From IMG/VR virus record IMGVR_UViG_3300020380_000001, positions 62,001-126,000 of that record: a DNA stretch of 64,000 bases. One strand, given 5' to 3'. Within the stretch, counting starts at the first letter, position 1. Each line of letters starts with the position of its first letter. The notes under the pieces are model-generated. The model was not told the DNA's origin. It saw nothing but the letters and a program-made list of their open reading frames with translations, and did not search any database. Below, one piece after another: positions 8,644-40,215 of this stretch. A program made the translations under genes and the position numbers.

Positions 8644-8646
8644 TGT

Positions 8647-9735: not shown

Positions 9736-9738
9736 TAT

Positions 9739-10437: not shown

Positions 10438-10440
10438 ATA
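10434..10440 (+). promoter_or_regulatory. T4-like late promoter box TTAAATA
   Basis: Overlaps the stop of the exonuclease gene, before 10465. Confidence 0.5.
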
Positions 10441-10464
10441 ATACTACTATTTGAAGGAATAACG

Positions 10465-11418: not shown

Positions 11419-11430
11419 ACAGGGGTGCGT

Positions 11431-11889: not shown

Positions 11890-11899
11890 CGAGACGAAA

Positions 11900-16250: not shown

Positions 16251-16263
16251 AAAGGAAACACAC

Positions 16264-16569: not shown

Positions 16570-16633
16570 TAGCCGCAAAAGGTGAAAATATCGTAAATAC
16601 TCCTAGTAATACACAATATTTAGGGAGTTTTAC

Positions 16634-16801
16634 ATGGCGAAGAATGCCTTTGAAATCCGTACAGACATTTTGGAATTAGCTACTAAGATTGTTCTTGCCG
16701 GATCTAAAGAATCAGAAAAATGCGAAGTAGAAGAAGTACTTAAAGTAGCAAACGAGTTGAACAAATTCGTAAGTGAAAAAAGTGATTCATCCTCGCGATA
16801 A
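16634..16801 (+). CDS. small conserved-looking phage protein (55 aa, MAKNAFEIRTDILELA...), absent from the track
   Basis: Translated by hand; GGGAG RBS, GTAAATA late box at 16593, terminator after the stop. Confidence 0.75.
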   Translation: MAKNAFEIRTDILELATKIVLAGSKESEKCEVEEVLKVANELNKFVSEKSDSSSR

Positions 16802-16814
16802 AGTACCGCAGTAG

Positions 16815-16841
16815 AAAGCGCTCATATAAAGGGCGCTTTTT
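16815..16841 (+). terminator. intrinsic terminator
   Basis: AAAGCGCTC-loop-GGGCGCTTTTT. Confidence 0.75.
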
Positions 16842-16873
16842 CATTTCAAACAAACCGCACAAAATTAAATATC

Positions 16874-16902
16874 TAGACTTTTGCGTAATACTAATATAGA
16901 AT
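16874..16902 (+). promoter_or_regulatory. sigma70-type promoter TAGACT-17-TAGAAT
   Basis: A-rich UP element; drives the paralog array. Confidence 0.6.
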
Positions 16903-16933
16903 TGATGTAATATTTCTATAAAAGTAAAACGCC

Positions 16934-22727: not shown

Positions 22728-22756
22728 TTGATTAATTCTTTAAAGTTTGTTAGTAT
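22728..22756 (+). promoter_or_regulatory. sigma70-type promoter TTGATT-17-TAGTAT
   Basis: Upstream of rIIA. Confidence 0.5.
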
Positions 22757-22790
22757 TGAATTATATTTTAACCAAGCTTTAAGGTATGTA

Positions 22791-25598
22791 ATGAAAGTCA
22801 CAACTAAAGGGAAAGAAACACGGACTTCGAGCGGAGTTGCCTCGACAGGTTTCACTATAAAATCTAACGCGCACGCTTTTAAGATATTATCAAGCAACAT
22901 GTATTCAAACCCACGACACGCTATTATCCGTGAGTTGTCTACTAACGCACTTGACGCACACGCGATGAATGGCAACACCGACAAGCCGTTTGATGTGACC
23001 CTCCCGACTCAGTTTAATCCGGTATTCGTGTTACGGGATTACGGCCCGGGATTGGATATGGACAATGCAACTAATCTCTATACCACATATTTCGACAGCA
23101 CTAAAAACGACAACAACGAAGCCGTAGGCGGCCTTGGTCTTGGATCCAAATCACCGCTTGGTTATACAGACATTTTTAATGTTGTGTCTTACCACGAAGG
23201 CAAGGCGCACCATTTTGCCGTAATTATTAATGAAGAAGGCCTCCCGTCTATCAACCATTTGGGCAGCTCGGACACTGACGAACCGTCAGGTCTTGAAGTT
23301 TCTGTTCCGATGAAAAACAACGAATCTTCTGAACGTTGCCATTGGCTAGCAGAAGCCATTGACATTTATATGTGGTTCCCTGAAGGTTCTGTTAATATTG
23401 TTAACCCGTCAGCGTACGATGACCGTCTTATTGATGAAGATATAGCTAGTATCGTCCAGGCAGGCAAAGCAGCGCTAGAAGAAGCCGCTGACTACGATAT
23501 AGTGTCGTATTCTACTAACATATACTTCAATGAAGGTAACGGTAGGCTGAATTATCACACCTCCAAAGTACGGATACGTAGCTCAGGCCTTTACGCTCAA
23601 ATGGGACCTATAATTTACCCAGTAAGTATGGACCGTTTGGTGCTTCCGAACAACATGACTTTAAACGCGCCTGACTCCGCAGTAGTAATGAAGTTTGGTA
23701 TAGGTGAACTTACGATTGCACCTTCCCGTGAAGAACTCCACTATGACGACGAAACAGTCTCTGCCTTAAGTAAACGTGTATGGCAAGCAGTTAACAACAC
23801 AATCACAAGTATCACAGATGCAGTTGAAGAAATACAAACCATTGAACAAGTAATTGAAATGGCTAAGTCTGGACTGGAACTTGATGTACCCGGCGGTACA
23901 TATGCAGCTCGTATGGCAAGTATGGATTTTCGTTCGCTATTAAGTGATCGTGTTCAGAAAATCGTTGACGCTCAGTATAATCCTATACTATCTGTATCGA
24001 CACTTTCTTTGGAGTCTGCGCGAGTAGCGCATAAGAAGAACAGGTACAGTATTAACCTTAGCATGTCAATACCTGACTTGTTTGTGACACATGGTACTAT
24101 ACCTGCAGAAGATGTAGCTGAGGTCAAACAAGCGCTTTGTCGTGCACGTATGATGAAAGCCGATAAGACATTTGACGTTGTCTATACAGAAGTAGTACAC
24201 CGACACATACTGGACAAAGTTTACGAAAATTATTTGGAATCTGACCAAGCCGACGAAGTAGTTGAAGCGGTTGCTGAACTGCTAGGTCTTGACCCTAGCG
24301 ATGAATACTTTGACGAGACAGATCTGCCGTTGGGTAGTCTACGCCCGCGACATTTAAAGGGTTTGGTGGATGACGGTTTCGAAAACTTCAGTACTGCTTA
24401 TGCTTTTGAATATGATTTCGGCAAGTCGTGGACTCGTACTTGGACAAGTAGCAAATTTTTCAAAGGCAGTGTGGAGATTTTGGTTGAAGACAAGCCCGGT
24501 CATGTGAATGCTTGGCGCCAATACGTTAAGGAAGAACGCGCTTACTACTGCAACATGAGTATCCTTGCAAACGAAAAAGACGCTAAGCTAATCAAAGCGT
24601 TCCTTGATGCGGTTGGCTTAGAAGTATCACATTACGGCAACGTAAGTGAGTTTAAGCCTGTAGCTTATATTAAGGAAATCAACAAGCGCGATACGTCTGC
24701 TATGAATATTGGTGTCCGCCGAGTGCGCAAGGACGGCTCGCTAATTGATTCATATTTAGAAAACTGGGATATTGTTAGCGTACATTCCGATAATACGTTG
24801 TACGTGAGTATAGAGGCAGGCACACTGGGATCACCGTATTCTCTTGAGACAATGGAAGCGTGTAGCAAGTATTCTGATCAAGTCAAAGAGCTAGTTAACA
24901 AGGCATATACGCTGCCGTCAGGTGACCCGGTTTCTAATATATTGTTTTATACAGCAAGCCAAAGGAACGTGAAGGCCATTGCCAACCTTGAAAATTGTTT
25001 GTCTATTCCGGTAAAAGACTTCCGTGATAAAATATCTGAAATGGCAGTATTGGATCACAAAGACTACATCGATTCTATTAAAGGTGTATCGTCTGGCGAA
25101 TTAGCTGGTAATATGCCGAGCTTTATAATGGAAACTATAGAGTTCATAACGGATTTTTGTCCTGAACTTAGATTTAAGATAGATGACGATTTCACTAGTA
25201 AATACGTCAACAAGGTCTTAACAATTACGTCAGCCACTACGAGCAACACTTACAAGTTCTTAGAGGCAGTAATTGGTAAACAAGACTTCCATGCTATTAT
25301 TGAAGACGAGTCTTCAAAAGAAAGTAAAATGTTGCGGGACGCCAAGTTCTGTGGTAAAATCGCTAACGTTTTCGCGACACCGGTACTGTATTCATTCGTG
25401 CGCGGCTTGAGACTTGCGAATAATAACGCTTATTCGTCTACGGGCATTTATGACTGTAGTGCGTGCGAACTAAAGCAATATAATGGCCAGGAGCGCACGG
25501 TAAACATACCGGAAGTTTCTATCAAAGAAGCGCTAAGACAAGCACGGAATATAATACGAGATCAGGTAATAACTGATACTAACACAGGAGAGGAATAA
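22791..25598 (+). CDS. rIIA: rIIA-like protein (lysis-inhibition/Rex-exclusion protector)
   Basis: GHKL-type N-domain (IIRELSTNALDA, DYGPGL, GGLGLGSKS, SREELHYD); directly upstream of rIIB; start moved to ATG 22791. Confidence 0.9.
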   Translation: MKVTTKGKETRTSSGVASTGFTIKSNAHAFKILSSNMYSNPRHAIIRELSTNALDAHAMNGNTDKPFDVTLPTQFNPVFVLRDYGPGLDMDNATNLYTTYFDSTKNDNNEAVGGLGLGSKSPLGYTDIFNVVSYHEGKAHHFAVIINEEGLPSINHLGSSDTDEPSGLEVSVPMKNNESSERCHWLAEAIDIYMWFPEGSVNIVNPSAYDDRLIDEDIASIVQAGKAALEEAADYDIVSYSTNIYFNEGNGRLNYHTSKVRIRSSGLYAQMGPIIYPVSMDRLVLPNNMTLNAPDSAVVMKFGIGELTIAPSREELHYDDETVSALSKRVWQAVNNTITSITDAVEEIQTIEQVIEMAKSGLELDVPGGTYAARMASMDFRSLLSDRVQKIVDAQYNPILSVSTLSLESARVAHKKNRYSINLSMSIPDLFVTHGTIPAEDVAEVKQALCRARMMKADKTFDVVYTEVVHRHILDKVYENYLESDQADEVVEAVAELLGLDPSDEYFDETDLPLGSLRPRHLKGLVDDGFENFSTAYAFEYDFGKSWTRTWTSSKFFKGSVEILVEDKPGHVNAWRQYVKEERAYYCNMSILANEKDAKLIKAFLDAVGLEVSHYGNVSEFKPVAYIKEINKRDTSAMNIGVRRVRKDGSLIDSYLENWDIVSVHSDNTLYVSIEAGTLGSPYSLETMEACSKYSDQVKELVNKAYTLPSGDPVSNILFYTASQRNVKAIANLENCLSIPVKDFRDKISEMAVLDHKDYIDSIKGVSSGELAGNMPSFIMETIEFITDFCPELRFKIDDDFTSKYVNKVLTITSATTSNTYKFLEAVIGKQDFHAIIEDESSKESKMLRDAKFCGKIANVFATPVLYSFVRGLRLANNNAYSSTGIYDCSACELKQYNGQERTVNIPEVSIKEALRQARNIIRDQVITDTNTGEE

Positions 25599-26938
25599 TG
25601 ATATCGTATATCATACGTGAAGATAGTGTTGTCGTTTTCGTAGACGGCAAACAACACATCGTTTCACAGAGTAATCACCCGCGATTTGCTGGTATTGTAG
25701 ATGCCATTGATCGTGAAGATCACGAGTATATTCGAGAGAATATAAACGTTAAGGACGCAATAACTCGTGAAATCACCGGCGCTTGTGAAGGTCGTGTAGA
25801 AGTAACCGACTCACAAGTATTGTTTAACGGGGCAGTTGTTACCAACTCAATCGGTAAGCGTATCCTTAAATGTATCGAACAAAAGCTACCGTTCAGACCT
25901 CTGATGCGCTTCCTGGACAATATCATGGAAAACCCGTCTCGTACGGCAGTTGAAGAACTGTTCTTGTTTTTAGAACATAACGACTTGCCAATTACAGACG
26001 ACGGTCACTTGCTTGCGTACAAAAGCGTAACGGAAAACTTCAAGGACCGTCACACCGGTACTATTGACAATTCGCCCGGACAAGTAGTGGAAATGCCGCG
26101 TGAAGAAGTTGATAGCGAACGTGAAAGAACATGTTCATCCGGTTTGCACTTTTGCGCGTTGCACTACTTGAGCACGGCATACGGCTATGGTGGCCAAGTT
26201 GTTATCCTTAAAATTAACCCACGTGACGTGGTAAGTATTCCGTCGGATTACAATAACTCTAAGGGCCGCTGCTGTCGTTACGAAGTGTTATGCAAACAAA
26301 ACAAGCCTGGCGACGATATTCTAGCTCAAGGCCCAGCAGTAGTTGAGACCGAAGCGGTTAAAGATATCGTGAACAAGACTTCTACTGAAGTATATAACAC
26401 TGACGGTAGCGAGTTTGTTCCTGAAGAACGCGGATCAACTGTACACTTTGAAAAACCGGTTGAAGAAGTACCGGAAGAAGTAGTTGAAGAAAAGCCGGCT
26501 GAAACTGTTACCGGGTATAGTGTTCCTGGCGAATTACAGGTACCGACTGTTACTGATGAAACCCATCCGTTTGTTGGTAAAAACTTAGCGCTATTCAGTG
26601 TATCTGGTACGTTCTATAACGGTCGTCGTTACGTTGAAGCTAAGCTTCCTATCTACGTTGCATTAGAAGATGGCATGAGTTTAGACGATGCTGCTGAAAC
26701 TCTAATAGAGTGTGAAGAAGCTGTTCGCTACCGTGTCTCTAACTTCCGTGTAGGCGCTAAGCAGACATTACTAGTTAGACGCGGTGATGGTCCTGATTCT
26801 CTTAATGTTGAGATTCAAAGCACCGGAAAGGTTAAGCTTAATAAACACGTTTCGTTTAATGGCGTATGTGTTGAAAGTACCGAAAACGGTAAAACTTTGA
26901 TTGGTCTTAACGTCGGAAGCCCTGGCCGCTTACAATAA
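25598..26938 (+). CDS. rIIB: rIIB-like protein with a C-terminal extension
   Basis: LPITDDGHLLAYK, CSSGLHFC, DVVSIPSDYNNSKGRCCRY. Confidence 0.92.
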   Translation: MISYIIREDSVVVFVDGKQHIVSQSNHPRFAGIVDAIDREDHEYIRENINVKDAITREITGACEGRVEVTDSQVLFNGAVVTNSIGKRILKCIEQKLPFRPLMRFLDNIMENPSRTAVEELFLFLEHNDLPITDDGHLLAYKSVTENFKDRHTGTIDNSPGQVVEMPREEVDSERERTCSSGLHFCALHYLSTAYGYGGQVVILKINPRDVVSIPSDYNNSKGRCCRYEVLCKQNKPGDDILAQGPAVVETEAVKDIVNKTSTEVYNTDGSEFVPEERGSTVHFEKPVEEVPEEVVEEKPAETVTGYSVPGELQVPTVTDETHPFVGKNLALFSVSGTFYNGRRYVEAKLPIYVALEDGMSLDDAAETLIECEEAVRYRVSNFRVGAKQTLLVRRGDGPDSLNVEIQSTGKVKLNKHVSFNGVCVESTENGKTLIGLNVGSPGRLQ

Positions 26939-26997: not shown

Positions 26998-27879
26998 ATG
27001 GATACTTTTGACACACAGTATTACGAGCTTCTTCTCCATTTGGTGAATGTAGCTGAAGAAAAACCTTCATCCCGTCCGGGCATGAAAACAAAGTCGACAT
27101 TCGGGCATTCCATGTCAGTTGACTTGAGTGAATCCTTCCCATTGACCACATTGCGCAAGACTCCACTTAGATGGATATTTGAAGAAACAATGATGTTCGT
27201 GCGCGGTGAATCACAAACGAAAGTCCTAGAAGAAACCGGTATTACTATTTGGAAAGGTAATTCAAGCCGCGAATTCTTAGATAACAAAGGTCATACTGAT
27301 TGGCCGGAAGGTGAAATCGGGCCTGGTTCCTATGGTGCCCTGTGGCGTGCGTTCCCCGGTAAGGACGGCAAGACTGTCGATCAACTTAAACAGCTTGTAG
27401 ACGGGCTAAAGAATAACCCATACGACCGCAGACACTTAATTAGTGCATGGCATCCGCAGTACTCGGTGGATTTTGCTGCGCTACCCGCTTGCCACATATT
27501 ACAGCAATATGATGTAACGCCTAGCGGCAAGCTAAACAGCAACTTTTACATGAGATCCAACGATGTGTTATTCGGGCTACCGTTTAATATGGCGCAGTAC
27601 GCGTTCATGAATATCTGTATTGCTAAACTCGTTGGACTTGAACCCGGCAAACTCACTTACATGTGTGGTGATTCGCACATTTACGAAAACCAGTATGCTG
27701 CGTCTGAATACCTACTGTTACAGACAGAGCAAATGGATATTCCGCCACCGCCGAAACTAGAAATTACAAAAGAGCTAAACACATTAGATGACTTTGTAAA
27801 TCTCAAGTACACAGACTTGCAGCTAACAGGCTATAACCCTAATCCGGATATACCGGACAAACCAAAGATGGCTGTTTAA
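26998..27879 (+). CDS. thyA: thymidylate synthase
   Basis: LTTLRK, PYDRRHLISAW, ALPACH, RSNDVLFGLPFN, DSHIYENQ. Confidence 0.95.
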   Translation: MDTFDTQYYELLLHLVNVAEEKPSSRPGMKTKSTFGHSMSVDLSESFPLTTLRKTPLRWIFEETMMFVRGESQTKVLEETGITIWKGNSSREFLDNKGHTDWPEGEIGPGSYGALWRAFPGKDGKTVDQLKQLVDGLKNNPYDRRHLISAWHPQYSVDFAALPACHILQQYDVTPSGKLNSNFYMRSNDVLFGLPFNMAQYAFMNICIAKLVGLEPGKLTYMCGDSHIYENQYAASEYLLLQTEQMDIPPPPKLEITKELNTLDDFVNLKYTDLQLTGYNPNPDIPDKPKMAV

Positions 27880-27988: not shown

Positions 27989-28678
27989 ATGTCATTTAAT
28001 AAAACTAAAACAGACCCAGTTCTGGGCGCTAAAATCCAAGAACACTTACTTGCGAAAGGTGTAGCAACTCCGGTTGTAGACGAGTTTCTAACAGTAGAAG
28101 CCAAAGAAAAAATATCTGTACTTGAAAAACACTTCTTTGAAATTTGGAAGAACTTAGGTATGGATATGACAGACGACAGTCTGTGTGAAACCCCTAAGCG
28201 TATGGCTAAAATGTACGTGTTGGAAACAATGTGGGGCCTACTGCCTGAAAACTTTCCTAAGTGCACCGCCGTTGACAATAAAATGTCGTATGACGAAATG
28301 GTTCTTGAGTGCAACATTAACGTTCAGTCTAACTGTGAGCACCACGGTGTAGTGATTGACGGTCTTGGCTATGTTGCATATATGCCGAAAGACAAAGTAC
28401 TGGGCTTAAGCAAGATCAACCGTATTGTTGAATACTTTGCTAAACGACCACAAATCCAGGAGCGCTTAACTGAACAGGTTTACTACGCGCTACAATACAT
28501 CTTGGGCACTGACGACATCGCCGTTGTTATTGACGCGACTCACTATTGTGTTAAATCGCGCGGTGTTGAAGATACTGGATCTAGCACTATGACTAGCAAG
28601 TTAGGTGGCCAGTTCAAAGAAAACCAAGCACTGCGCCAAGAGTTTATGTCTCTTGTAAACGCGAAGCGCATCAAGTAA
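27989..28678 (+). CDS. folE: GTP cyclohydrolase I
   Basis: ETPKRMAKMY, SNCEHH, GLSKINRIV, RPQIQERLT, HYCVKSRGV. Confidence 0.95.
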   Translation: MSFNKTKTDPVLGAKIQEHLLAKGVATPVVDEFLTVEAKEKISVLEKHFFEIWKNLGMDMTDDSLCETPKRMAKMYVLETMWGLLPENFPKCTAVDNKMSYDEMVLECNINVQSNCEHHGVVIDGLGYVAYMPKDKVLGLSKINRIVEYFAKRPQIQERLTEQVYYALQYILGTDDIAVVIDATHYCVKSRGVEDTGSSTMTSKLGGQFKENQALRQEFMSLVNAKRIK

Positions 28679-28688
28679 GGGAGGCATT

Positions 28689-29696
28689 ATGGCCGAAAGT
28701 ACAATGTTCTTGTCGAATATAAGCGTTGTGGACCATGCTTATATTGACGACATGGGTATGATTATAGGCGGATCCTATAACCCTAGCTTTTTAGTAACCG
28801 GGAAAGTAACAGACGACGAAAGTGTAGTTATTGATTTTAGTACCGGTAAAAAAGCACTGAAGAAAATAATCGATCACGACGTCTACGGATTCGATCACAA
28901 GCTGTGGTTGATAGAAGGTTTTAGTAACGTGTCTACTGTTACTATTGTGTCGTCTGCTAAGCGCGAATACCTGAATAAGCAGTTTCTGGCGATCAGTGAT
29001 CCCCGTCTTAAGCAGTACATGGAAGAAAGCGAAAAGACTATGTCTATGAGAAGTGATGTTGTTAGAATTACTTCTAGAGCGTTTGAAATCGATGTGCCGC
29101 GCGACGCGATTAAATGGGTGCAGAACCTTAAGCCGAGTAAAGACCTGCAAGAAATAGTAACCGAAGCACTTGTTGCCTTGCTTGAAGAAAAGCTACAGGC
29201 CGAAGCCGATTACGAAGTTTCGCTTGAGTGCAAACTAGAGGTCACTGAGCATGTGTATAATCAACATGTGCCTACCGCACCGTTTAGATATACTCACGGC
29301 TTAAAGTTCTCTACGTCTTGGGGATGCCAAAATATTGCCCATGGGCACTTGAGTTATATGCAACTTATTTTCGACGATATGACGAAGACTATTCGTCCTG
29401 AATACGTAAATGCAGTTGCCAAAGAGTTCGAAAATGTAGTGTTTGTGTTTAAAGAAAATGTCATTGCACACGACGATAAACACATCACTATTCAATACAG
29501 AACTAATCGCGGCCATTTCCGTGCAAAGTATAACTTGAAACGTTTTGATATTCGCTTGCTTGATACTGAAACTACGGTTGAGTATCTCGTAGATCACATC
29601 TCCAAGTGTGATGCTGTGCAGTCACTTCTTAAAGAAGGACTTAAAGAGCTATACGTTAGTGAAGGACTATCCAAAGGCGCTATGAAGCGTTTCTGA
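28689..29696 (+). CDS. queD: two-domain QueD-like 6-carboxytetrahydropterin synthase
   Basis: Tandem T-fold; N-domain VIDF...IIDHD..GFDHKL; C-domain YTHGLK...CQNIAHGH and ETTVE; immediately after folE. Confidence 0.7.
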   Translation: MAESTMFLSNISVVDHAYIDDMGMIIGGSYNPSFLVTGKVTDDESVVIDFSTGKKALKKIIDHDVYGFDHKLWLIEGFSNVSTVTIVSSAKREYLNKQFLAISDPRLKQYMEESEKTMSMRSDVVRITSRAFEIDVPRDAIKWVQNLKPSKDLQEIVTEALVALLEEKLQAEADYEVSLECKLEVTEHVYNQHVPTAPFRYTHGLKFSTSWGCQNIAHGHLSYMQLIFDDMTKTIRPEYVNAVAKEFENVVFVFKENVIAHDDKHITIQYRTNRGHFRAKYNLKRFDIRLLDTETTVEYLVDHISKCDAVQSLLKEGLKELYVSEGLSKGAMKRF

Positions 29697-29771: not shown

Positions 29772-30812
29772 ATGCCAAATCATTATGGAATTAGCGTAGT
29801 GGGTGCTGAACCCGGACAGCCACCAACATCCGGTGGTCCTACACTAGAAGCATTTATGTTCGATACATTCGAAGACGCTGTGCCGTTTATAGCTAGTTAT
29901 GAGCCGCCTACGAATTTCGAAGTGTTTCAGACATGGAACCGTTTCTCTAATAACCTTTTCTTTGAACCCGGCGACCCGTTGACCAATGGCGCAGGCGCGT
30001 TTATTTACAACTCATCAGCAGACCGCATACAGTGCACGGCTAATACTACCCAATTTGTTGGATTCTCAAGCCCAACCAAAACCCGTAACGTGACAATTGA
30101 AGTCACAGTTGGCTCTACCGCACAAGATGATGATGCGCTGGCTGTTATTGTTGCCCATGAGCCTTACACTAACGCCGAGGGAAATCCAGCTAGTAGGTTC
30201 TTAGCCGTCATGCGACACACTGGCGGGTTGGTACTAGGTCAAGGCGCAGGTCAATATTATCTGGTGTGTTTGTCTTATAATGATCCTGATTTTACCGGGG
30301 GCGGTTACTTACCTCTCGGCAGTCCGGTAAACTGGAACAACGGCCGTAATTCAAACAACGGTGGCTGGGCATCAAGCGGTAAAAGTAGGATTCGCATAGA
30401 ACGCGAGGGGCCGGTGATACGCACTTGGGCAACACCGTTTTTAAACCAAACATTAGCTGCGATGTCGGAGATAGATCCTAGTGAATACAATCCTAACAGC
30501 ATTATCAACATTAACACCAGCAATTATCCTGAGCTTGCGTGGGTAGGCGCTAATGAGTTGGCTTTTGGCTATGGATGCCAGTCCCAGGACGATGCATACT
30601 TCGCAAATATAGAAATAGAAGGCGGCCTGCTAAACGATACTATTTTTGTGGCGTCTACTAACAGTGTTTACAAATACAACTACGACACAGGTGAATGGGA
30701 TATTGTGGAAGGCGAAACTGTGCAGAGTCGCTTAGGTAACCGCATCGATATAGTTAACCCGAACACTGGTAAAAAGTACGTCGTTGACATAAACGGTAAC
30801 TTAATAACTTAA
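29772..30812 (+). CDS. probable late virion protein with a lectin/jelly-roll-like domain
   Basis: Late box at 29740; Gly/Asn/Thr- and aromatic-rich beta composition. Confidence 0.5.
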   Translation: MPNHYGISVVGAEPGQPPTSGGPTLEAFMFDTFEDAVPFIASYEPPTNFEVFQTWNRFSNNLFFEPGDPLTNGAGAFIYNSSADRIQCTANTTQFVGFSSPTKTRNVTIEVTVGSTAQDDDALAVIVAHEPYTNAEGNPASRFLAVMRHTGGLVLGQGAGQYYLVCLSYNDPDFTGGGYLPLGSPVNWNNGRNSNNGGWASSGKSRIRIEREGPVIRTWATPFLNQTLAAMSEIDPSEYNPNSIININTSNYPELAWVGANELAFGYGCQSQDDAYFANIEIEGGLLNDTIFVASTNSVYKYNYDTGEWDIVEGETVQSRLGNRIDIVNPNTGKKYVVDINGNLIT

Positions 30813-31046: not shown

Positions 31047-31406
31047 TTGCGAGACTTAGATAAAAACTATAACAGAGCCATGCATAATAATAACAATAAT
31101 ACGGGCTTGTCGTGTGAATCCTGGTACGAAGAACATCGCCGTACAATTAACGGGCTGTATAGCTTGGATTCAGGTACGGCCTTTTCACAGGAGTTATACG
31201 GTGCATTATTTAAAACGTGCGATTTTTTGCCGGTAACCCTTGTAACGGACTATCACGAAAACGGATTTAAGAAAAACGACTTGTTAATTCGCCGCTGCGA
31301 GTTTACGGGCTGCTTTTTCACAACCACGGTTTTGAGTGATTGTCATATGAATACTGATTTTGACGTCGACTTTGTTATACGACTAAATTGTAGTAACAAA
31401 GTGTAA
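31047..31406 (+). CDS. hypothetical protein (start uncertain, possibly ATG 31080)
   Basis: ORF track; downstream of a sigma70-like promoter. Confidence 0.5.
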   Translation: MRDLDKNYNRAMHNNNNNTGLSCESWYEEHRRTINGLYSLDSGTAFSQELYGALFKTCDFLPVTLVTDYHENGFKKNDLLIRRCEFTGCFFTTTVLSDCHMNTDFDVDFVIRLNCSNKV

Positions 31407-31420
31407 AAGGACATAAGTAT

Positions 31421-31810
31421 ATGACACCCATCAAACAAAGACTTATCTACGTCACGTTTCAAAAAGAAGGCATACACTGCTACCCAGCTGCTGCTACTGA
31501 TCCAGAGTTAGCAACAGGCGACTGGAAAGACGTTAGTTTTCTTGCTCATCCACATCGACACATCTTCCATTTTAAAGTCACTATTAGTGTGACTCATAAT
31601 GATCGTGATATCGAGTTTATCCAGTTTAAGCGTTGGTTAGAACGCTTATATAACGGTACGCTTGAGTTAGATCACAAAAGTTGCGAAATGCTAGCCGAAG
31701 AATTAGGTGAAATCATACTCAAGGAATACGGGTACGACGGTGTTTACCTAAAAGTAGACGTTAGCGAAGACGACGAAAATGGCGCTGTGCTGGTGTGGGG
31801 TGATAAATGA
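31421..31810 (+). CDS. dpdL: QueD-paralog T-fold protein, DpdL-like (predicted 7-carboxy-7-deazaguanine decarboxylase)
   Basis: EGIHCYP and LAHPHRHIF fit the LxxxHRHxF signature I recall for DpdL; RDIEFIQFKR, SCEMLA and EDDENGA; folE/queD nearby. Confidence 0.65.
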   Translation: MTPIKQRLIYVTFQKEGIHCYPAAATDPELATGDWKDVSFLAHPHRHIFHFKVTISVTHNDRDIEFIQFKRWLERLYNGTLELDHKSCEMLAEELGEIILKEYGYDGVYLKVDVSEDDENGAVLVWGDK

Positions 31811-32883
31811 ATACGATTTTTATTGTCCCTATTGAGCCTTTAGAAACGCGATACACCGGTGAGTGGTATGAGCATTTACCTACTACCCTTACTCGGCAAA
31901 TTACTGACAACGAAGCAGAATACCAAGTTCGGGTTATTGACGGTGATGTTGTGTCACCTAGACCAAGCCCAGGCGCATTCTTAGACTTCGCAGCAACCAA
32001 CATTTACAAGTCATCTCAACTAATTAGTATAGCAGAGCTATTCCGCGATGGTGAAGTTAAGCCAGGCGACAAGTTCCTGTTTACTGATTTTTGGAATACG
32101 TGCGCTCTACAACTGCGTTATATGAGCGATCTTAACAATATTCCGGTTGAGATACACGGGTTAGCACACGCCGGTAATTATGACCCTAATGACTTCCTAG
32201 GGCGCATAAAAGACGGTGACTGGGCTAAAGCTACAGAGCAAGCATTTTATCACGCATACACGAATATCTGGTTTGCAACACACACGCACTTGGATTTATT
32301 CAGTGACAACGTGATGGGCAGCGGTTTTGAAGATTCAGCTGACAAGCTACGCATAACCGGCTGGCCAATGGAATATATGCACACGATGAATAAGCCGTAT
32401 ATTAAAACGGAAAAGAAAGACATTGTGTTATTCCCGCACCGCTTAGCACCAGAAAAGCAACCCGAAATATTCGACATGCTCGCTAAGCGCATGCCTGAGT
32501 ATGAATTTATCAAGTGCCAAGACAAAGAACTTACCAAGCGCGAGTATCACACACTGCTCGCCGAGAGTAAGGTTGTCTTCAGCGCAAACTTACAAGAAAC
32601 GTTAGGGATTAGTGGACCTGAAGGAATGTGCTTTGGTGCAATTCCGTTGGTACCATTGAGACTTAGCTATCTTGAAATGTTCGATCCGGAGTTTACTTAT
32701 CCTTCGGAATGGACTACAAGCCTTGAAGCTGCCGAAGAACATGCAGACGACTTAGTTGCGTTAATACGCCACGCGGTGCAGAACTACGGGAATCTTCAAA
32801 CTAAACTTCAACATAATAAGAATAAGATACTACGCAATTTCTTTTCAGCAGACGCGTTATACGCAGAGCTGTTAGATCTCTAA
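31807..32883 (+). CDS. GT-B fold glycosyltransferase
   Basis: C-terminal LFPHRLAPEKQPE and SANLQETLGISGPEGMCFGAIPLVP (GT4-like ExxGxxxxE region); ATGA overlap with the dpdL-like gene. Confidence 0.8.
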   Translation: MNTIFIVPIEPLETRYTGEWYEHLPTTLTRQITDNEAEYQVRVIDGDVVSPRPSPGAFLDFAATNIYKSSQLISIAELFRDGEVKPGDKFLFTDFWNTCALQLRYMSDLNNIPVEIHGLAHAGNYDPNDFLGRIKDGDWAKATEQAFYHAYTNIWFATHTHLDLFSDNVMGSGFEDSADKLRITGWPMEYMHTMNKPYIKTEKKDIVLFPHRLAPEKQPEIFDMLAKRMPEYEFIKCQDKELTKREYHTLLAESKVVFSANLQETLGISGPEGMCFGAIPLVPLRLSYLEMFDPEFTYPSEWTTSLEAAEEHADDLVALIRHAVQNYGNLQTKLQHNKNKILRNFFSADALYAELLDL

Positions 32884-33880: not shown

Positions 33881-34399
33881 ATGACGTCAGCTGCTGAGTT
33901 CGAACAAAATCTTCAAATAGGACAACAGTTCGAAACAGAAGTTGCGGAAAAGGTTATACGCTCCGTATTAGCGCCAGACGGGTACATAATACCCACCCAT
34001 AATTGGCAAGTAGATCAAGGAAACAATAGAGGGCCACGCATACTTCTGCCTAGCGGCGGTAAAGTAACGTTGCCTGATTTCTTTGTGATCGACCCAGTTA
34101 ACGGCACCAAAACGTTAATTGAAGCCAAGTACAAAAAGAAAGCCGCATATGTAAACGGGCACGATGGATATTGCGTAGAGCAATACAAATGTTGGGATTA
34201 TCAACGCGCTGCCCGTTTAATGGACGCGACCTTGCTGTTTTTAATCGGTGACGGTACCACACAAGAAGTACTGTTATACGATCCTTCTGAAACCGACACC
34301 TATACTACCCATACTTTTAATAATAAGTTTACCAAATTCAAGCCAGTTGATAACTGGGTGTTTTTAAAACACAAAGGAACCAAGGTGGATATCAAATGA
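33881..34399 (+). CDS. PD-(D/E)XK restriction-endonuclease-like nuclease
   Basis: GQQFE (motif I), LPDF (motif II), IEAKYK (motif III). Confidence 0.7.
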   Translation: MTSAAEFEQNLQIGQQFETEVAEKVIRSVLAPDGYIIPTHNWQVDQGNNRGPRILLPSGGKVTLPDFFVIDPVNGTKTLIEAKYKKKAAYVNGHDGYCVEQYKCWDYQRAARLMDATLLFLIGDGTTQEVLLYDPSETDTYTTHTFNNKFTKFKPVDNWVFLKHKGTKVDIK

Positions 34400-34959
34400 A
34401 ATACGATGGATGTGACACATGCGCTTCGCCTGACGTAACACAGAAAGTCAAACTAACAACTGCCCGCCGTCGCCTTGATGATGCGCTAATGTACTGTATA
34501 GAAAATGCCACCCAAGAGGTAGCAAACGTGCGGTTCGTAGAAATCGGTACTTCTGTTAGTATTGGTAAGTTTTTCAGAAAGCCATGGTCACTTGGCATAT
34601 GTAAGCGCCGCATATATTTAGACACTTCTGTGATGAGACAGGTTATTGCCAACCTTGAACGTGTTGTCCGTTTCCACGGCGGCGCCCGCGCACTCGCTGA
34701 CTTGTACACTAAGGCAGTAGAAAAAGAAGATCCAGAAGTAACGCGTCGGCTAATGCTGTACTTCCTTTACTTAGGTTCTCTCGAGGTGCCAGTAAGCAGA
34801 AAAACTGCTAATCCAAGCCGCTTTGTCAAGTTAGACGTGATGGTCTATAGTCATTTAGCTGGCGTAGACATGTCATCTAATACCGCAGCGCTTGCAGTAA
34901 TCAGTGGTGACTATGAACCTTTAGTTGAACGCACAAAGTACAAACTGGGCATAGCATGA
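34396..34959 (+). CDS. hypothetical protein
   Basis: ORF track; ATGA overlap. Confidence 0.65.
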   Translation: MKYDGCDTCASPDVTQKVKLTTARRRLDDALMYCIENATQEVANVRFVEIGTSVSIGKFFRKPWSLGICKRRIYLDTSVMRQVIANLERVVRFHGGARALADLYTKAVEKEDPEVTRRLMLYFLYLGSLEVPVSRKTANPSRFVKLDVMVYSHLAGVDMSSNTAALAVISGDYEPLVERTKYKLGIA

Positions 34960-35516
34960 TTACCGTAGAACCTCAACGAGGGCTTGAGCTATTATCCGGG
35001 ATAAAATACTTGATTCATCAGCATCCTGATATGGATATTGTGCAAGCCTCCATACCGCCGGAAAAATGGGTAAGAAACGGCCCACATCACGCGACCGTTT
35101 CGGTGGAGTGTTTGTTGTTCAAGCGAGGCTCTCATTATTCAATTATACCGATACCTACATTAGGTGCATTATTGCATTCGTCAGCCGCTAAGCTTCGTTG
35201 GTATATTCCGACTGCGCCGTTACATGAAAATGTGAAATCATGGCAGCCCATGTTCTTCGACGTTCTTTGTAGTGTCAATGCAGTAGCCAACGGGAAGTAC
35301 TACTTCGCCAAAGATGGCGGGTTCCTTAAAGTCAAATTAGACTCTCTTATACATCGCTTAACATACAAGCGAACCGCCACTTATGTGCCGAGTGAACAAG
35401 TGTGTATGAATTCACTAGCAAATGACTGGACTCCGCTTTTGATGAAAAGAATGGAAAAATCAAAGGCATTTTCTACTTGGGTTAATATTTCTTTGGATCT
35501 GTGCACGTCGTGGTAG
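34956..35516 (+). CDS. hypothetical protein
   Basis: ORF track; ATGA overlap. Confidence 0.65.
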   Translation: MITVEPQRGLELLSGIKYLIHQHPDMDIVQASIPPEKWVRNGPHHATVSVECLLFKRGSHYSIIPIPTLGALLHSSAAKLRWYIPTAPLHENVKSWQPMFFDVLCSVNAVANGKYYFAKDGGFLKVKLDSLIHRLTYKRTATYVPSEQVCMNSLANDWTPLLMKRMEKSKAFSTWVNISLDLCTSW

Positions 35517-36121
35517 TGGAAATTCCTGACTACATTAGTATGACATGTGACTCGCCGGCTGAACCGTTTTATATGACTGCCAGGCGAGCATTGCGTAGAT
35601 TCGTAATATCATACGCTAACCGTATAGATGGTGATATATACGAGGTAATAAAACCAATACCCGTAGTTGACGGAACGAGGTATATGACATCGTATATTAA
35701 ACCCGTTCATGTTCGTGCCATGAGTTACTTGTTTGCTAAACAACCACTCGAGGACGGCATATATGAAGTAAGCGTGTTGGGTCTAATGAGCCTGTATAAC
35801 GCGGTTGATGCTTCGAATATATCAATGACCCAGTCCCCTAGGCCAGCGATCATTCCGTCTGATCTCGAGGATACAGCGAATATCATATACTCGGAATTTT
35901 TGTCAGACATGTATAATGATCAGAAAGAGGCGTGTTATCGTTACGAGGATATGGGGATTAATCTCAAGGATTCAGTAAAAACTGCGTGTGATAAAAACCG
36001 AATTCGATTGATATGCAATCATAGCGAATCGTTTAGGACCAGACTCAATGAAATGGGATATGTTCGAATCCAGCCCGGCTCTGGAAAAGATAAAAGAAAA
36101 CCGGAAAAAGATGTTAGCTGA
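35501..36121 (+). CDS. hypothetical protein
   Basis: ORF track. Confidence 0.6.
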   Translation: MHVVVVEIPDYISMTCDSPAEPFYMTARRALRRFVISYANRIDGDIYEVIKPIPVVDGTRYMTSYIKPVHVRAMSYLFAKQPLEDGIYEVSVLGLMSLYNAVDASNISMTQSPRPAIIPSDLEDTANIIYSEFLSDMYNDQKEACYRYEDMGINLKDSVKTACDKNRIRLICNHSESFRTRLNEMGYVRIQPGSGKDKRKPEKDVS

Positions 36122-36602
36122 TATACTAAGATCAAAAGCCGAATGCGAGGTCGGCCATGTAAATGCGCCTTCTGTCCAGCCGTATATTAAAGATATGCGC
36201 GAGCATGCTTGTGTGTATCTTTTTGAAAGTACCTCGATGACCAACCGCTTTCTTAATATGTTTAGAAAAAATAAACGTTGCGAGTATGTAGTTGTTTTTG
36301 TTAGTGTATACAACATAACAGGCTTCGTTCGATCGTTTTTGCAAGAATACACTCATAAGAAACCATTGAGTGAATACGATGCCGAAAAGCTTGTATTGGC
36401 ACTAGTGTTGTTCAGTGCGCAATATGAAATCATGCGATATCTGCCTAGCATGCCTGACTTGAACTCACCTAGATTGACACTCAAGAACGTCCTGCGTGAA
36501 TATGAAAAGGTAGGTGACACGGTTAAGATAGATGCAGCTGAGTTGGCACTAGCAAGGCTCGAGGGCTATACTTACTATCAGCGACTATGGGATAACGTAT
36601 AA
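36048..36602 (+). CDS. hypothetical protein
   Basis: ORF track. Confidence 0.6.
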   Translation: MKWDMFESSPALEKIKENRKKMLADILRSKAECEVGHVNAPSVQPYIKDMREHACVYLFESTSMTNRFLNMFRKNKRCEYVVVFVSVYNITGFVRSFLQEYTHKKPLSEYDAEKLVLALVLFSAQYEIMRYLPSMPDLNSPRLTLKNVLREYEKVGDTVKIDAAELALARLEGYTYYQRLWDNV

Positions 36603-37159
36603 TGGCAGAACTAGACAACACCTGGCAAGGAGGGTACTTGGACCACTTCACACGCGCTGAAGCGTATACCAAGCGAGTCGTACGCGATATTGGTGGAGAT
36701 ACCGTATTTCTTGACAATAAAACGTTCATGATAATTACGCCTGAATATATCTTCGTACAAAAGGCACATTATCCGTGGTACGCTATGCCGTGGCAAAAAC
36801 CAAAAGTTTATGCAAGTATATGGGATTGTCCTGACACTATCGGCTTGTCGTTTGCTTCAGTGTCATCTAAGCTGACAATGGCTATGCACATGTCAATGCC
36901 ATCCACTGATTCATCGAATAGCTTCAATGAGTGGTTTAAGTACGCACGTACTGATACTAAAGAGTTGAACGACAACATACGGTTTTTCGACAAATTTTTT
37001 AAACTGGCATCGCCTCATTTTAAACGAATGTCTGAATTCGTCCCGCTTACTGAGGAAGAGCAGAGTATTAATATGCTCTATGCCAGGCAAAATGTTCGTC
37101 CGCCGTGTGTTAGTGAGCTTAGACCAAAGAAGCGCCGCTGGTATTGGCCTTTTGATTAA
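36602..37159 (+). CDS. hypothetical protein, paralog A of a tandem pair
   Basis: Aligns by eye with 37172-37732. Confidence 0.7.
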   Translation: MAELDNTWQGGYLDHFTRAEAYTKRVVRDIGGDTVFLDNKTFMIITPEYIFVQKAHYPWYAMPWQKPKVYASIWDCPDTIGLSFASVSSKLTMAMHMSMPSTDSSNSFNEWFKYARTDTKELNDNIRFFDKFFKLASPHFKRMSEFVPLTEEEQSINMLYARQNVRPPCVSELRPKKRRWYWPFD

Positions 37160-37171
37160 TAGGACATTATA

Positions 37172-37732
37172 ATGAATCTTGCAAATCCGATAGATTTGAC
37201 TAACGTACATATGCATGGTGATGTGATGTACGGTGCTGAGATGGATACCCAGTGGGCACTCGCTGATGCAATGAACCAACCAATATTTCTTAATGAAGTG
37301 ACGTTTGTGTTCTTTCACGAGGCTGGCATATTCGTGCAATACCGACACGATAGATGGTTTACTAACTCGTTTAATAAAGCGAAAGTGTATGCGGCCAGCT
37401 ATAATGTAGACGACCCGCAGAACCCTCGGCCTGTGAATTTACCCAAAGCAACGTCATACGAGATATCGGATATGACTAGGCAGTTAGACATCCGAAGAAT
37501 GTTCCTGCGCAGGTCTGAGTTTGCCAAAAGGTGGCGCAAGCACTTTTTCGACAGCCCGACAGAGCTTGACAAAGAAGTTAACTTTTTCAACCGAATATTT
37601 TTGTCTTTGTTGCCTAGATGTGAGCTAACGTCTGACCTTCGGCCCCTTACTGAGACAGAGCAAGCACAAAATGTCTTTTACGCCAAACAGAACTGCGTGC
37701 CTAGTATAGTGAGTGGTTATGATCGAACATGA
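37172..37732 (+). CDS. hypothetical protein, paralog B of a tandem pair
   Basis: Aligns by eye with 36602-37159. Confidence 0.7.
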   Translation: MNLANPIDLTNVHMHGDVMYGAEMDTQWALADAMNQPIFLNEVTFVFFHEAGIFVQYRHDRWFTNSFNKAKVYAASYNVDDPQNPRPVNLPKATSYEISDMTRQLDIRRMFLRRSEFAKRWRKHFFDSPTELDKEVNFFNRIFLSLLPRCELTSDLRPLTETEQAQNVFYAKQNCVPSIVSGYDRT

Positions 37733-38348
37733 TGAGATTTACCTTTCTAACGGGTATTTGGAAGAAGATCCGGATAACAAGTATAAGTTCTTAGTGCCGT
37801 CACCGTATTATACGAGTGGTAGAGAAAAGAACTTTGCCTTACTAGGATCCAAAGACAGAGAACTTATTAACCCGAGTAATGGTGACGAGTTTCTTTCTGA
37901 GTATAAGATCCTAAGCGTTGCTGAGTTCGAGGATGAAGAAGGCAACAATGGCTATGTGCCGTATACTGTGATGCTGTACTCAATTAAGGACACTATCGCA
38001 GAAAAGTCTGTATCGAATATGCTTGGTCCGGGTTATTCCCCTGACTTGTTTACAGAGTTTACCAGGTTAAGCTACCGCAACCTTTATCCGGTTTACGCAT
38101 GGGCACTTTTTAATGATCAGGTTCCTGAAGCCAAACGAATAATTGAAATGGTGGAAAGAAAGGAAATTAACGACGATTTTTTTGACTTTATTAGCCAAAC
38201 GGTATTGACTTTTAACAATAATAAGTTATTATCGTATGAAGAACTACAAACCGCGGCATCAGTACTACGGACGTTTGGCACTTCGCCAGATGTACTAGAG
38301 ATGCCGAACCAAGTTATACAAAGGGCAAGTGATGTCTTCACGGAGTAA
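37713..38348 (+). CDS. hypothetical protein
   Basis: ORF track. Confidence 0.65.
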   Translation: MVMIEHDEIYLSNGYLEEDPDNKYKFLVPSPYYTSGREKNFALLGSKDRELINPSNGDEFLSEYKILSVAEFEDEEGNNGYVPYTVMLYSIKDTIAEKSVSNMLGPGYSPDLFTEFTRLSYRNLYPVYAWALFNDQVPEAKRIIEMVERKEINDDFFDFISQTVLTFNNNKLLSYEELQTAASVLRTFGTSPDVLEMPNQVIQRASDVFTE

Positions 38349-40213: not shown

Positions 40214-40215
40214 CT

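Follow-up and report, generated by a model that had tools for sequence, protein, structure and literature searches.

What does a phage do with a gene for a DpdL-type enzyme of the 7-deazaguanine DNA-modification pathway when that gene overlaps one for a sugar-transferring enzyme? The question is raised by a marine giant phage, of which we analyzed a stretch of 64,000 nucleotides (positions 62,001–126,000 of IMG/VR record IMGVR_UViG_3300020380_000001; hereafter the window). A first-pass annotation, made from the sequence alone, had described a QueD paralog with the motif LAHPHRHIF whose stop overlaps the start of a GT-B glycosyltransferase (GT) about 1.7 kb from folE and queD, and had suggested that the pair produces a glycosylated deazaguanine in DNA or, alternatively, a free pterin glycoside. 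The observation itself is confirmed (Table 1). Its interpretation is supported in part, since the identities of the genes and their linkage hold up while the chemistry is inferred.

Identity of the two proteins and their neighbours

Table 1. Features of the window discussed in the text
Position	Strand	Length	Feature
26998–27879			Thymidylate synthase homolog (ThyA), 4 kb upstream
27989–28678	+		GTP cyclohydrolase I (FolE), first step of the deazaguanine pathway
28689–29696	+	335 aa	Long QueD/PTPS-like T-fold protein, probable CPH4 synthase
31047–31406	+	119 aa	ORF of unknown function just upstream of DpdL; membership of the unit uncertain
31421–31810	+	129 aa	DpdL-family protein (ATG start), proposed 7-carboxy-7-deazaguanine decarboxylase
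31807–32883	+	358 aa	Glycosyltransferase, predicted GT-B fold, GT4-like (retaining-type)
31807–31810	+	4 nt	ATGA overlap coupling DpdL and GT (GT start ATG 31807–31809; DpdL stop TGA 31808–31810)

Neither member of the pair hits Pfam or NCBIfam directly, and the labels given by the first-pass annotation had therefore to be established by other means. The smaller protein is a member of the DpdL family. Its L41-A-H-P-H45-R46-H47-I-F49 matches the LxxxHRHxF signature which, in DpdL, stands in place of the QueD motif CxxxHGH (PMC10516641). It is 54.7% identical to the homolog of Acidovorax phage ACP17 [tblastn 8e-32, blastp 6e-40] and 34.7% identical to that of Cellulophaga phage phiST [CGPG_00067; 4e-9 and 7e-15], the two phages whose dpdL genes have been tested. 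The family invariants are G17, H19, L41, H45, H47, F49, H59, R62, E65, S87, C88, E89, E116 and D117, of which L41, H45, H47 and F49 are invariant in 20 homologs. It also hits PHROG 17812. A profile-profile comparison with phage QueD aligned HRH with HG[HY] at a probability of 62.5% [E 7.3e-5], and there is no PF01242 hit; the published HHpred value of 99.89% refers to the phiST protein.

The larger protein is a glycosyltransferase by predicted fold and by motifs. The AF2 model (pLDDT 90.5, pTM 0.89) gave 196 Foldseek matches in the PDB at E<=0.001, led by the GT4 enzymes glycogen synthase, BshA, MshA and sucrose-phosphate synthase, with E values down to 1.8e-11, and in BFVD the ACP17 homolog gave TM 0.87–0.91. 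An EX7E motif (E264-x7-E272), R212 and K217 are invariant across 30 homologs; that these are catalytic or donor-binding residues is inferred from GT4 enzymes in general. It belongs to a divergent lineage, since the window protein has no hit to PF00534, the PAC2 homolog scores 19.9 bits against a cut-off of 26.4, and only some homologs carry PF00534 (a few, as precomputed hits) or PF13524. The N-terminal (acceptor) domain matches no characterised family.

FolE has direct family hits [PF01227, 7e-56; NF006824, 287.7 bits, above its cut-off]. The long QueD has no direct Pfam hit and only weak hits to TIGR03367, but many of its homologs carry PF01242, and it is 31–34% identical to the genes annotated queD/PTPS in Vibrio phages nt-1, VH7D and 6E35.1a. 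The ORF preceding DpdL has no family hit; in the 97%-identical relatives (IMG/VR loci L005, L168 and L169) it is 125 aa long and overlaps the DpdL start by 4 nt, while in the window it stops 15 nt earlier.

A near-identity DNA search with 26.9–33.4 kb found nothing among GenBank phages. Single-sequence and profile searches against PDB sequences found nothing for the GT, DpdL, the long QueD, or the families X540 and c3 introduced below, nor did Pfam, NCBIfam and PHROGs for the GT, X540, c3 and a 77-aa inter-gene ORF. A promoter and terminator scan gave fewer sites than shuffled sequence. GC content is flat across the region, so there is no sign of recent acquisition, and the window has no tRNA genes.

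Conservation of the pair and its partners

The pairing is far beyond chance. The same 4-nt overlap occurs in L005, L168 and L169 and in Sinorhizobium phage Phosso. Among 78 DpdL-centred IMG/VR loci the GT lies downstream on the same strand in 68; eight of the ten exceptions are cut within 730 bp of DpdL, leaving 68 of 70 informative loci. Conversely, DpdL lies beside the GT in 72 of 80 GT-centred loci, or 72 of the 77 that are informative. The two genes are likewise adjacent in the cultured PA5oct-like phages, ACP17, Phosso and BUCT-ZZ01, while Magnetospirillum assemblies carry an overlapping GT-DpdL-X540-QueD operon. The first-pass annotation had named a lack of conserved adjacency as grounds for rejecting its reading, and this objection fails decisively. 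The module is very common: the GT search found 3954 homologs, and the IMG/VR scans returned at least about 600 loci for each gene. It also occurs in bacterial genomes, Magnetospirillum and Methylobacterium among them.

The partners within 10 kb of the GT were counted in 84 loci. X540, a family of 500–580-aa proteins, occurs in 74, FolE in 63–64, QueE in about 52 and a phosphoribosyltransferase in 34–56, with DNA polymerase and a clamp-like protein usually alongside. X540 is by predicted structure (pLDDT 82.8) a TGT/DpdA-fold transglycosylase. Its top seven PDB matches are all of the TGT family (TGT, DpdA or QTRT2), including the DNA preQ0 insertase DpdA [7ui4], and D136 of the GDSGGFQ motif and a second Asp, D332, are invariant. 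Sequence-profile comparisons were weak, with only 14–17% probability against E. coli Tgt and phiST DpdA3. X540 has no Pfam hit and is annotated "hypothetical" in every GenBank phage record matched.

Enzymes of sugar-nucleotide metabolism also belong to the module. GalE [336.8 bits] directly follows the GT in IMG/VR locus L006, and a 257-aa NAD epimerase/dehydratase is found in 30 loci. In the phage studied here, an NDP-sugar dehydrogenase lies about 355 bp past the window end, and Gfo/Idh/MocA and ADH-type oxidoreductases directly precede the DNA polymerase.

The window holds FolE and the long QueD but neither a DpdA-type enzyme nor QueE. No product identical to a 690-aa ORF of the window is on record. 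Contig CEPB01127043.1, however, carries proteins identical to two other window ORFs, and walking along it showed that an X540 homolog [2.2e-139, 35 of 36 invariants] and QueE [1.6e-91] follow the DNA polymerase, 49.5 kb from the GT. About 36 kb to the left of the window holds replication, recombination and structural genes but no TGT or QueE. No QueC was seen in the roughly 125 kb inspected, which leaves out about 100 kb of the genome.

DpdL also works without the GT in other phages: phiST, in whose DNA dDG has been shown, RHph_I1_18, Ahp1 and Bakedbeans. GT-less DpdLs are scattered across the DpdL tree, which did not separate them from GT-linked proteins and which contains long branches, and we draw from it no conclusion on gains versus losses. 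In addition, a subclade has c3 (a conserved 171-aa protein of unknown function), GT and X540 with no detectable DpdL, so the GT may not need the product of DpdL.

The likely acceptor of the sugar

We suggest, as somewhat more likely than not, that the DpdL-GT pair is the conserved core of a widespread, uncharacterised variant of the phage 7-deazaguanine DNA-modification system. FolE, the long QueD and QueE would make 7-carboxy-7-deazaguanine (CDG) from GTP; DpdL would convert it, by the published proposal to 7-deazaguanine; X540 would swap the base into DNA in place of guanine; and the GT4-like enzyme would transfer a sugar from an NDP-sugar onto the deazaguanine, either before or after insertion. 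The result would be a sugar-bearing guanine analogue that shields the DNA from restriction. What the analysis establishes are the gene identities, the folds (from models), the motifs, the conserved linkage and the presence of the full gene set in this phage lineage; every chemical step, including decarboxylation by DpdL and glycosyl transfer, the sugar, the acceptor atom and the timing are inferred.

There are no chemical data for any phage with this module. PA5oct DNA behaves as G-modified, and the authors of that study infer a modified G of unknown structure (PMC12191111); the restriction data predict GA/GG motifs for the modified G. The decarboxylase activity of DpdL is a literature proposal, and expressing the phiST or ACP17 dpdL and dpdA genes together gave no dDG (PMC10516641). 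Plain 7-deazaguanine offers no obvious O or N acceptor at C7, so that the acceptor would have to be N2, a ring carbon, or a different DpdL product. The GT is acidic (pI about 5), which gives no positive sign of DNA binding, although X540 is equally acidic. The DpdLs without a GT, the subclade without DpdL and the 49.5 kb that separate DpdL-GT from X540-QueE in this phage also count against the proposed route. A precedent is provided by HuiG, a glycosyltransferase which acts on a 7-deazapurine base.

It is possible, but unlikely, that the GT glycosylates a soluble molecule that never enters DNA, either a free deazapurine base or nucleotide (a huimycin- or tubercidin-like metabolite) or a pterin made from FolE/PTPS products. 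The window alone, with FolE, a PTPS/QueD-like protein, a putative T-fold protein and a GT, matches the cyanobacterial recipe; the acidity of the GT and the phosphoribosyltransferase common in the module would also fit, as tubercidin synthesis combines CDG, a phosphoribosyltransferase and a decarboxylase. The cyanobacterial UDP-glucose:tetrahydrobiopterin glucosyltransferase (BGluT) is among the fold matches [5zes/5zer, E 1.2e-8], but at rank 32–33, below BshA, MshA and many other GT4 enzymes, and thus represents generic GT4 similarity. Against this reading, QueE and X540 are standard partners of the pair, are present in this phage lineage and have no role in pterin glycoside synthesis, the module sits among replication genes, PA5oct DNA behaves as G-modified, and no sepiapterin-reductase-like gene was noticed next to the pair.

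The nearby ThyA, together with a dNMP kinase elsewhere in the genome, might suggest a glycosylated pyrimidine, with the GT beside DpdL only because DNA-modification genes cluster. Phage ThyA homologs can make 5-hydroxymethyl or 5-hydroxy pyrimidines which GTs then decorate (PMC13326640). The window ThyA, however, retains L143, C146, D169 and N177 (E. coli numbering), the residues of a dUMP-to-dTMP synthase, rather than the N177D, L143D/E or D169N of the hydroxylated-pyrimidine enzymes, and scores 200.8 bits on TIGR03284, above the 108.35 cut-off. ThyA occurs in only 2 of the 84 GT loci, no T4 alpha- or beta-glucosyltransferase relative appears among the top 50 PDB or BFVD matches of the GT, and the linkage to DpdL (68 of 70) and the overlapping operons are far tighter than loose clustering would give. 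We consider a hydroxylated-pyrimidine acceptor very unlikely.

Equally improbable is that the GT acts on something other than a nucleobase, for example a protein of the modification machinery or a host envelope component, or is a non-catalytic partner of DpdL or X540. GT4-fold enzymes do mostly act on sugars, lipids, small thiols or proteins, and there is no direct evidence for a nucleobase acceptor. The invariant EX7E motif and Arg/Lys pair nevertheless argue for catalysis, the near-obligate linkage with translational coupling persists across very divergent phages and bacterial cassettes, sugar-nucleotide enzymes co-occur, and envelope or protein glycosylation gives no reason for linkage to a putative T-fold enzyme and a transglycosylase.

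Relation to other modification systems

The phiST system (FolE-QueD-QueE-DpdL-DpdA3; Hutinet et al. 2023, PMC10516641) uses the same DpdL family and signature, the same upstream pathway to CDG without QueC, and a TGT-superfamily enzyme to put the base into DNA. It has no glycosyltransferase, its 259-aa DpdA3 is only marginally similar to X540, it carries a MazG-like enzyme, and its product is plain dDG/dCDG, while the GT-linked module adds X540, c3, a phosphoribosyltransferase and sugar-nucleotide enzymes. The bacterial Dpd and phage DpdA1/DpdA2 preQ0/ADG systems share post-replicative base exchange by a TGT-fold enzyme fed by the queuosine precursor pathway; here there is no QueC (on the sequence inspected), so no preQ0, and DpdL and a GT replace DpdB/DpdC. 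Bacterial copies of the GT-DpdL-X540 cassette sit in island-like contexts with a nuclease-domain protein and a recombinase.

In T4 (glucosyl-5hmC), RB69 and DLP3 (arabinosyl-5hoC) and RL38JI (hexosyl-5hoC) a phage GT likewise decorates a non-canonical base using NDP-sugars, with phage sugar-nucleotide enzymes nearby, but the base is a pyrimidine whose hydroxyl is made by a ThyA homolog, whereas here ThyA is canonical and the partners of the GT are purine/deazapurine enzymes. HuiG transfers GlcNAc onto a 7-deazapurine base, and tubercidin synthesis uses CDG, a PF00156 phosphoribosyltransferase and a decarboxylase, parts to which the GT, phosphoribosyltransferase and DpdL of the phage module are analogous. 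Those actinomycete clusters lack nucleic-acid insertion enzymes and make secreted metabolites, and their decarboxylase is UbiD-type, not T-fold. Galactosyl- and mannosyl-queuosine in eukaryotic tRNA are sugar-bearing 7-deazaguanine derivatives, no others being known to be established in a nucleic acid, and one of the responsible enzymes is reported to be GT4-like; the target is RNA, and the sugar sits on the cyclopentenediol side chain, which the present pathway would not make because it has no QueC, QueF or QueA (for QueC, on the roughly 125 kb inspected). The cyanobacterial tetrahydrobiopterin glucoside pathway (FolE, PTPS, reductase, BGluT) has a GT4-fold GT of about 355 aa, but includes neither the QueE nor the transglycosylase of the phage module.

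7-Deazaguanine DNA modifications are a major phage counter-defence. Eight derivatives are known, none of which carries a sugar, and the literature searched contained no report of a glycosylated deazaguanine in DNA; glycosylated DNA bases other than pyrimidines are not known. If confirmed, the module would add a new chemical class, and its enzymes, a bulky-substrate DNA transglycosylase and a base-specific GT, would be useful tools for DNA labelling. It would also explain the undefined modified G of PA5oct-like therapeutic phages and their sensitivity to END nucleases (PMC12191111), and may explain why DpdL plus DpdA from ACP17 gave no dDG on their own, since the ACP17 dpdL lies directly beside this GT, which was not co-expressed. 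More tentatively, these phages would replace part of their guanine with a glycosylated 7-deazaguanine, made by a dedicated TGT-like insertase, DpdL and a GT4-like transferase, which would be the first known sugar-bearing purine analogue in any DNA. In this view the system is abundant in marine and soil jumbo phages (more than 600 IMG/VR contigs) and present in the therapy candidate PA5oct, and would have been captured by bacteria as a self-marking cassette next to nuclease-like genes, which would make it a Dpd-like restriction-modification analogue.

Sequence identity of DpdL and of the predicted glycosyltransferase

The first-pass annotation described a 129-residue T-fold protein carrying the motif LAHPHRHIF, translationally coupled through an ATGA overlap to a GT-B glycosyltransferase and located near folE and queD. 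That observation is correct in its coordinates and in its features: the TGA stop of the first ORF overlaps the ATG of the second as ATGA, and the genes for FolE and a T-fold-like protein end 1.7 kb upstream. In relatives with 97% identity the ORF upstream of dpdL reads on to overlap the DpdL start by 4 nt, giving three coupled genes, while in the window a stop codon ends it 15 nt earlier.

Coordinates of the features discussed
Source	Position	Strand	Feature
Window	2629-3114		ORF with an identical protein on contig CEPB01127043.1
Window	22728-26938		rIIA-like (956 aa) and rIIB-like (446 aa) genes
Window	26998-27879		ThyA homolog
Window	27989-28678		FolE
Window	28689-29696		T-fold-like ORF (335 aa), long QueD type
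Window	29772-30812		ORF (346 aa) with PHROG hits to tail-fibre and virion structural proteins
Window	31404-31424		Junction of the upstream ORF with DpdL
Window	31421-31810	+	DpdL (129 aa)
Window	31679-31687		Ser-Cys-Glu triplet, DpdL residues 87-89
Window	31807-32883	+	GT-B, GT4-like glycosyltransferase, predicted (358 aa)
Window	34396-38348		Run of same-strand ORFs of about 185-210 aa with no family hits
Window	36602-37159 and 37172-37732		Paralogs within that run
Window	39086-40153		Bifunctional cytidylyltransferase-like + NUDIX protein (355 aa)
Window	40204-41646		NAMPT/NAPRTase-family protein (480 aa)
Window	63116-63679		ORF with an identical protein on contig CEPB01127043.1
L205 and L210 (same phage lineage, just right of the window)	L205 11240-14404; L210 15547-17470		Nucleotide-sugar dehydrogenase (420 aa) followed by 352-aa and 271-aa unknowns; Gfo/Idh/MocA and zinc-ADH-type oxidoreductases
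L190 (Magnetospirillum aberrantis)	8330-17494		Bacterial cassette and its surroundings; also in loci L191-L196, L183 and L185-L188
L009 (surveyed locus)	8557-9075		c3 family protein (171 aa)
L004 (phage ACP17)	7236-7721		c3 family protein, gp122
L041 (surveyed locus)	7140-7610		Cupin (156 aa)
L166 (Vibrio phage Bakedbeans)	7212-8363		gp176 (383 aa), with DpdL as its C-terminal part

For the smaller protein neither Pfam nor NCBIfam gave any hit, PHROGs gave only an unnamed family, and a profile comparison with phage QueD gave a probability of 62.5% (E 7e-5). A tblastn search of GenBank phages found 29 records, including Acidovorax phage ACP17 (54.7% identity) and Cellulophaga phage phiST (34.7%, matching CGPG_00067). 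These are the two phages whose dpdL genes were tested by Hutinet et al. 2023, who defined the signature as the CxxxHGH of QueD changed to LxxxHRHxF and proposed decarboxylation of 7-carboxy-7-deazaguanine (CDG) to 7-deazaguanine (DG). By sequence and by signature the window protein is therefore a DpdL, although the enzymatic activity remains a proposal for every member; expression of the phiST or ACP17 dpdL and dpdA genes together in E. coli gave no dDG, and the authors suggested that other enzymes may be needed. In an alignment of 20 homologs L41, H45, H47 and F49 are invariant, as are H19, H59, E65, E116 and the triplet S87-C88-E89. Since the published description stresses the loss of the catalytic cysteine of QueD, this other invariant cysteine may matter for the chemistry.

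The larger protein has no Pfam hit, but an AlphaFold2 model built on 30 homologs is confident (pLDDT 90.5). Its best PDB matches are retaining GT4 enzymes, namely glycogen synthase, BshA, MshA and sucrose-phosphate synthase (E down to 1.8e-11), and among viral models the ACP17 homolog matches with TM 0.87-0.91. E264-x7-E272 (the EX7E motif), R212 and K217 are invariant. The T4 alpha- and beta-glucosyltransferases are not among the matches, and the cyanobacterial pterin glucosyltransferase appears only at rank 32-33, behind many other GT4 enzymes. That the protein acts on something other than a nucleobase, or plays a non-catalytic role, is very unlikely in view of the conserved catalytic motifs and the translational coupling to DpdL.

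Conservation and gene neighborhood of the pair

The glycosyltransferase (GT) family is large, a protein search finding 3954 homologs and an IMG/VR scan at least 600. In 80 GT-centred IMG/VR loci DpdL lies within 10 kb in 72, and three of the eight exceptions are cut at the GT. In 78 DpdL-centred IMG/VR loci the GT follows on the same strand in 68; eight of the ten exceptions end within 730 bp of DpdL, so that 68 of 70 informative loci have it. Among cultured phages the pair is adjacent in the PA5oct-like Pseudomonas jumbo phages (GT first), ACP17 (GT first), Phosso (the same order and the same 4-nt overlap as in the window) and Synechococcus phage BUCT-ZZ01, while it lies within 1.5-3 kb in Xanthomonas phages X1 and BUDD and in Burkholderia phage BCSR5. 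Non-conserved adjacency, which had been set beforehand as grounds for rejecting the proposal, is thus ruled out.

The link is not obligatory for DpdL. The GT is lacking in phiST, RHph_I1_18 (the closest GenBank DpdL at 64%), Ahp1 and Bakedbeans, and GT-less DpdLs are scattered on the DpdL tree. In Bakedbeans the N-terminal 260 residues of the DpdL-containing protein have no family hit. In Aeromonas phage Ahp1 DpdL is followed by a 290-aa unknown, a dNMP kinase and a dCTP-deaminase/dUTPase-like protein, which hints at a nucleotide-level route in GT-less phages. Conversely, a small subclade (loci L016, L018, L048, L049 and L069) has a c3-like protein, the GT and a short (about 400-aa) X540, with QueD-QueE-FolE-phosphoribosyltransferase upstream but no detectable DpdL. 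The GT may therefore not depend on the product of DpdL.

The typical gene order around the pair is DNA polymerase, a clamp-like protein, X540, a 171-aa unknown (c3), DpdL, a 77-aa ORF, GT, phosphoribosyltransferase, FolE, QueE and 5'-3' exonuclease. X540 denotes a protein of 500-580 aa without Pfam, NCBIfam or PHROG hits, which is "hypothetical" in every GenBank record matched. Its consensus carries GDSGGFQ and FDCASP, and its model (pLDDT 82.8) has TGT-family structures as all of its top seven PDB matches: bacterial TGT (5.8e-9), the DNA preQ0 insertase DpdA 7ui4 (1.1e-5), then QTRT2 and human TGT. X540 lies within 10 kb of the GT in 74 of 84 loci and occurs in 72 of 79 DpdL-centred loci. The c3 family, often in two copies, lies between X540 and DpdL in 68 loci and has no hit in Pfam, PHROGs or PDB sequences; a distant member precedes the GT in the subclade lacking DpdL.

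Sugar-nucleotide enzymes recur in the module. A full GalE sits directly after the GT in locus L006 (336.8 bits), and a 257-aa NAD epimerase/dehydratase occurs in 30 loci. A HIT protein (27 loci) and a cupin matching the PHROG annotated "cysteine dioxygenase" (28 loci, just after the GT) also recur. An oxygenase at that position could create a hydroxyl acceptor on the base, but the cupin is absent from the window.

The window phage and the bacterial copies

The window is atypical. HMM searches of its 64 kb found no X540, QueE, c3 or phosphoribosyltransferase, and among its 31 ORFs of 200 aa or more there is no TGT, radical-SAM or QueC domain. Phosso provides a precedent, since its X540 lies 172 kb from its DpdL-GT pair, next to primase and DnaB. 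We walked along NCBI contig CEPB01127043.1 (224,574 bp, marine metagenome), which carries proteins identical to two window ORFs. In about 36 kb to the left of the window only replication, recombination and structural genes were present. To the right there follow, in order, the nucleotide-sugar dehydrogenase, about 355 bp past the window end; lysis genes; the Gfo/Idh/MocA and zinc-ADH-type oxidoreductases, directly before the polymerase; DNA polymerase B; a 256-aa protein; an X540 homolog (579 aa, HMM E 2.2e-139, 35 of 36 family invariants, both Asp kept); and QueE (301 aa, E 1.6e-91). X540 starts 49.5 kb after the GT stop, which is 18.4 kb beyond the window. c3 was found neither in the window nor in the parts of this contig that were read. 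Based upon the assumption that window and contig are collinear, which rests on the two identical proteins and the shared gene order, this lineage encodes FolE, QueD, QueE, DpdL, a TGT-fold enzyme and the GT. The QueD is of the long type of nt-1-like Vibrio phages. The dehydrogenase and the oxidoreductases together could tailor the sugar donor for the GT.

The rIIA-like and rIIB-like genes lie directly upstream of thyA, and the window also holds ribonucleotide reductase large and small subunits, an RNA-ligase-domain protein and a tail-sheath-domain protein. The phage looks like a T4-related marine jumbo phage of about 225 kb, seen in many Tara Oceans assemblies. The ORF with structural PHROG hits is oddly placed for such a gene, between the QueD-like gene and DpdL. 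Further downstream, at least two ORFs of the run lacking family hits are paralogs (30% identity, E 2e-18). The cytidylyltransferase-NUDIX protein and the NAMPT/NAPRTase-family protein which follows it look like the phage NAD+ reconstitution pair (NARP2-type counter-defence) mentioned for Vibrio phages (PMC12028318); in one related contig the second gene is split in two.

A scan of GTDB representative genomes gave 34 loci, with X540 beside the GT in 26 and DpdL present in 23. Five Magnetospirillum-type assemblies have an overlapping GT-DpdL-X540-QueD operon. In M. aberrantis a protein with a CoiA-like nuclease domain sits directly upstream of this operon, and a HEPN protein and a small (190-aa) tyrosine recombinase are nearby. 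The recombinase (56-99% identical across genera) is conserved next to the cassette in ten or more assemblies from several genera, and a 288-aa protein, related to part of 840-895-aa proteins with no Pfam hit, also lies near the cassette. The arrangement resembles a self-modification cassette in a defence island and may be a restriction-modification-like island.

The inferred pathway and its acceptor

Nucleases that sense modified G target PA5oct; the authors of that study inferred a modified G, without a determined structure, and noted QueE and PTPS genes (PMC12191111). Full-text literature searches found no report of a glycosylated deazaguanine in DNA. Precedents exist for the parts, since HuiG glycosylates a 7-deazapurine base, and tubercidin synthesis uses CDG with a phosphoribosyltransferase and a decarboxylase. 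ThyA homologs which make 5-hydroxy- or 5-hydroxymethyl-pyrimidines for later glycosylation carry N177D, L143D/E or D169N. The ThyA homolog next to FolE keeps N177, L143, D169 and C146 (E. coli numbering) and passes the thymidylate synthase equivalog TIGR03284; it is an ordinary dTMP synthase, not a hydroxymethyl- or hydroxy-pyrimidine synthase. This, and the tightness of the link to DpdL, make a glycosylated pyrimidine very unlikely. A soluble pterin or deazapurine glycoside is likewise unlikely, being disfavoured by QueE, X540 and the replication-gene context.

While the gene identities, the folds of the GT and X540, the motifs and linkage, and the completeness of the gene set, are established by the analysis, every chemical step is inferred. 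GTP would be converted to CDG via FolE, QueD and QueE, DpdL would act on CDG, X540 would exchange the product for guanine in DNA, and the GT would add a sugar from an NDP-sugar that the neighbouring sugar-nucleotide enzymes supply or tailor. The phosphoribosyltransferase could salvage the released guanine and so pull the exchange forward or, alternatively, could make a deazapurine nucleotide. The weak point is the acceptor, because DG has no hydroxyl or amine at C7. The candidates are the 2-amino group, as in huimycin; a ring carbon; a hydroxyl installed by the cupin, which only some loci have; or a DpdL product other than DG. Loci with the GT but no DpdL hint that the GT may accept a CDG-type base. 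The sugar might be added before or after insertion; the large size of X540 would fit a bulky substrate, but that is speculation.

The first-pass interpretation, that the coupled pair makes a glycosylated deazaguanine in DNA or that the T-fold protein has a different activity feeding the GT, is thus supported in part, its product being inferred. The finding itself is real, and it is broader than the window sequence alone could reveal. The module is best placed among the 7-deazaguanine DNA-modification systems, from whose known forms it is set apart by a GT4-like transferase coupled to DpdL and a previously unannotated TGT-fold putative insertase.
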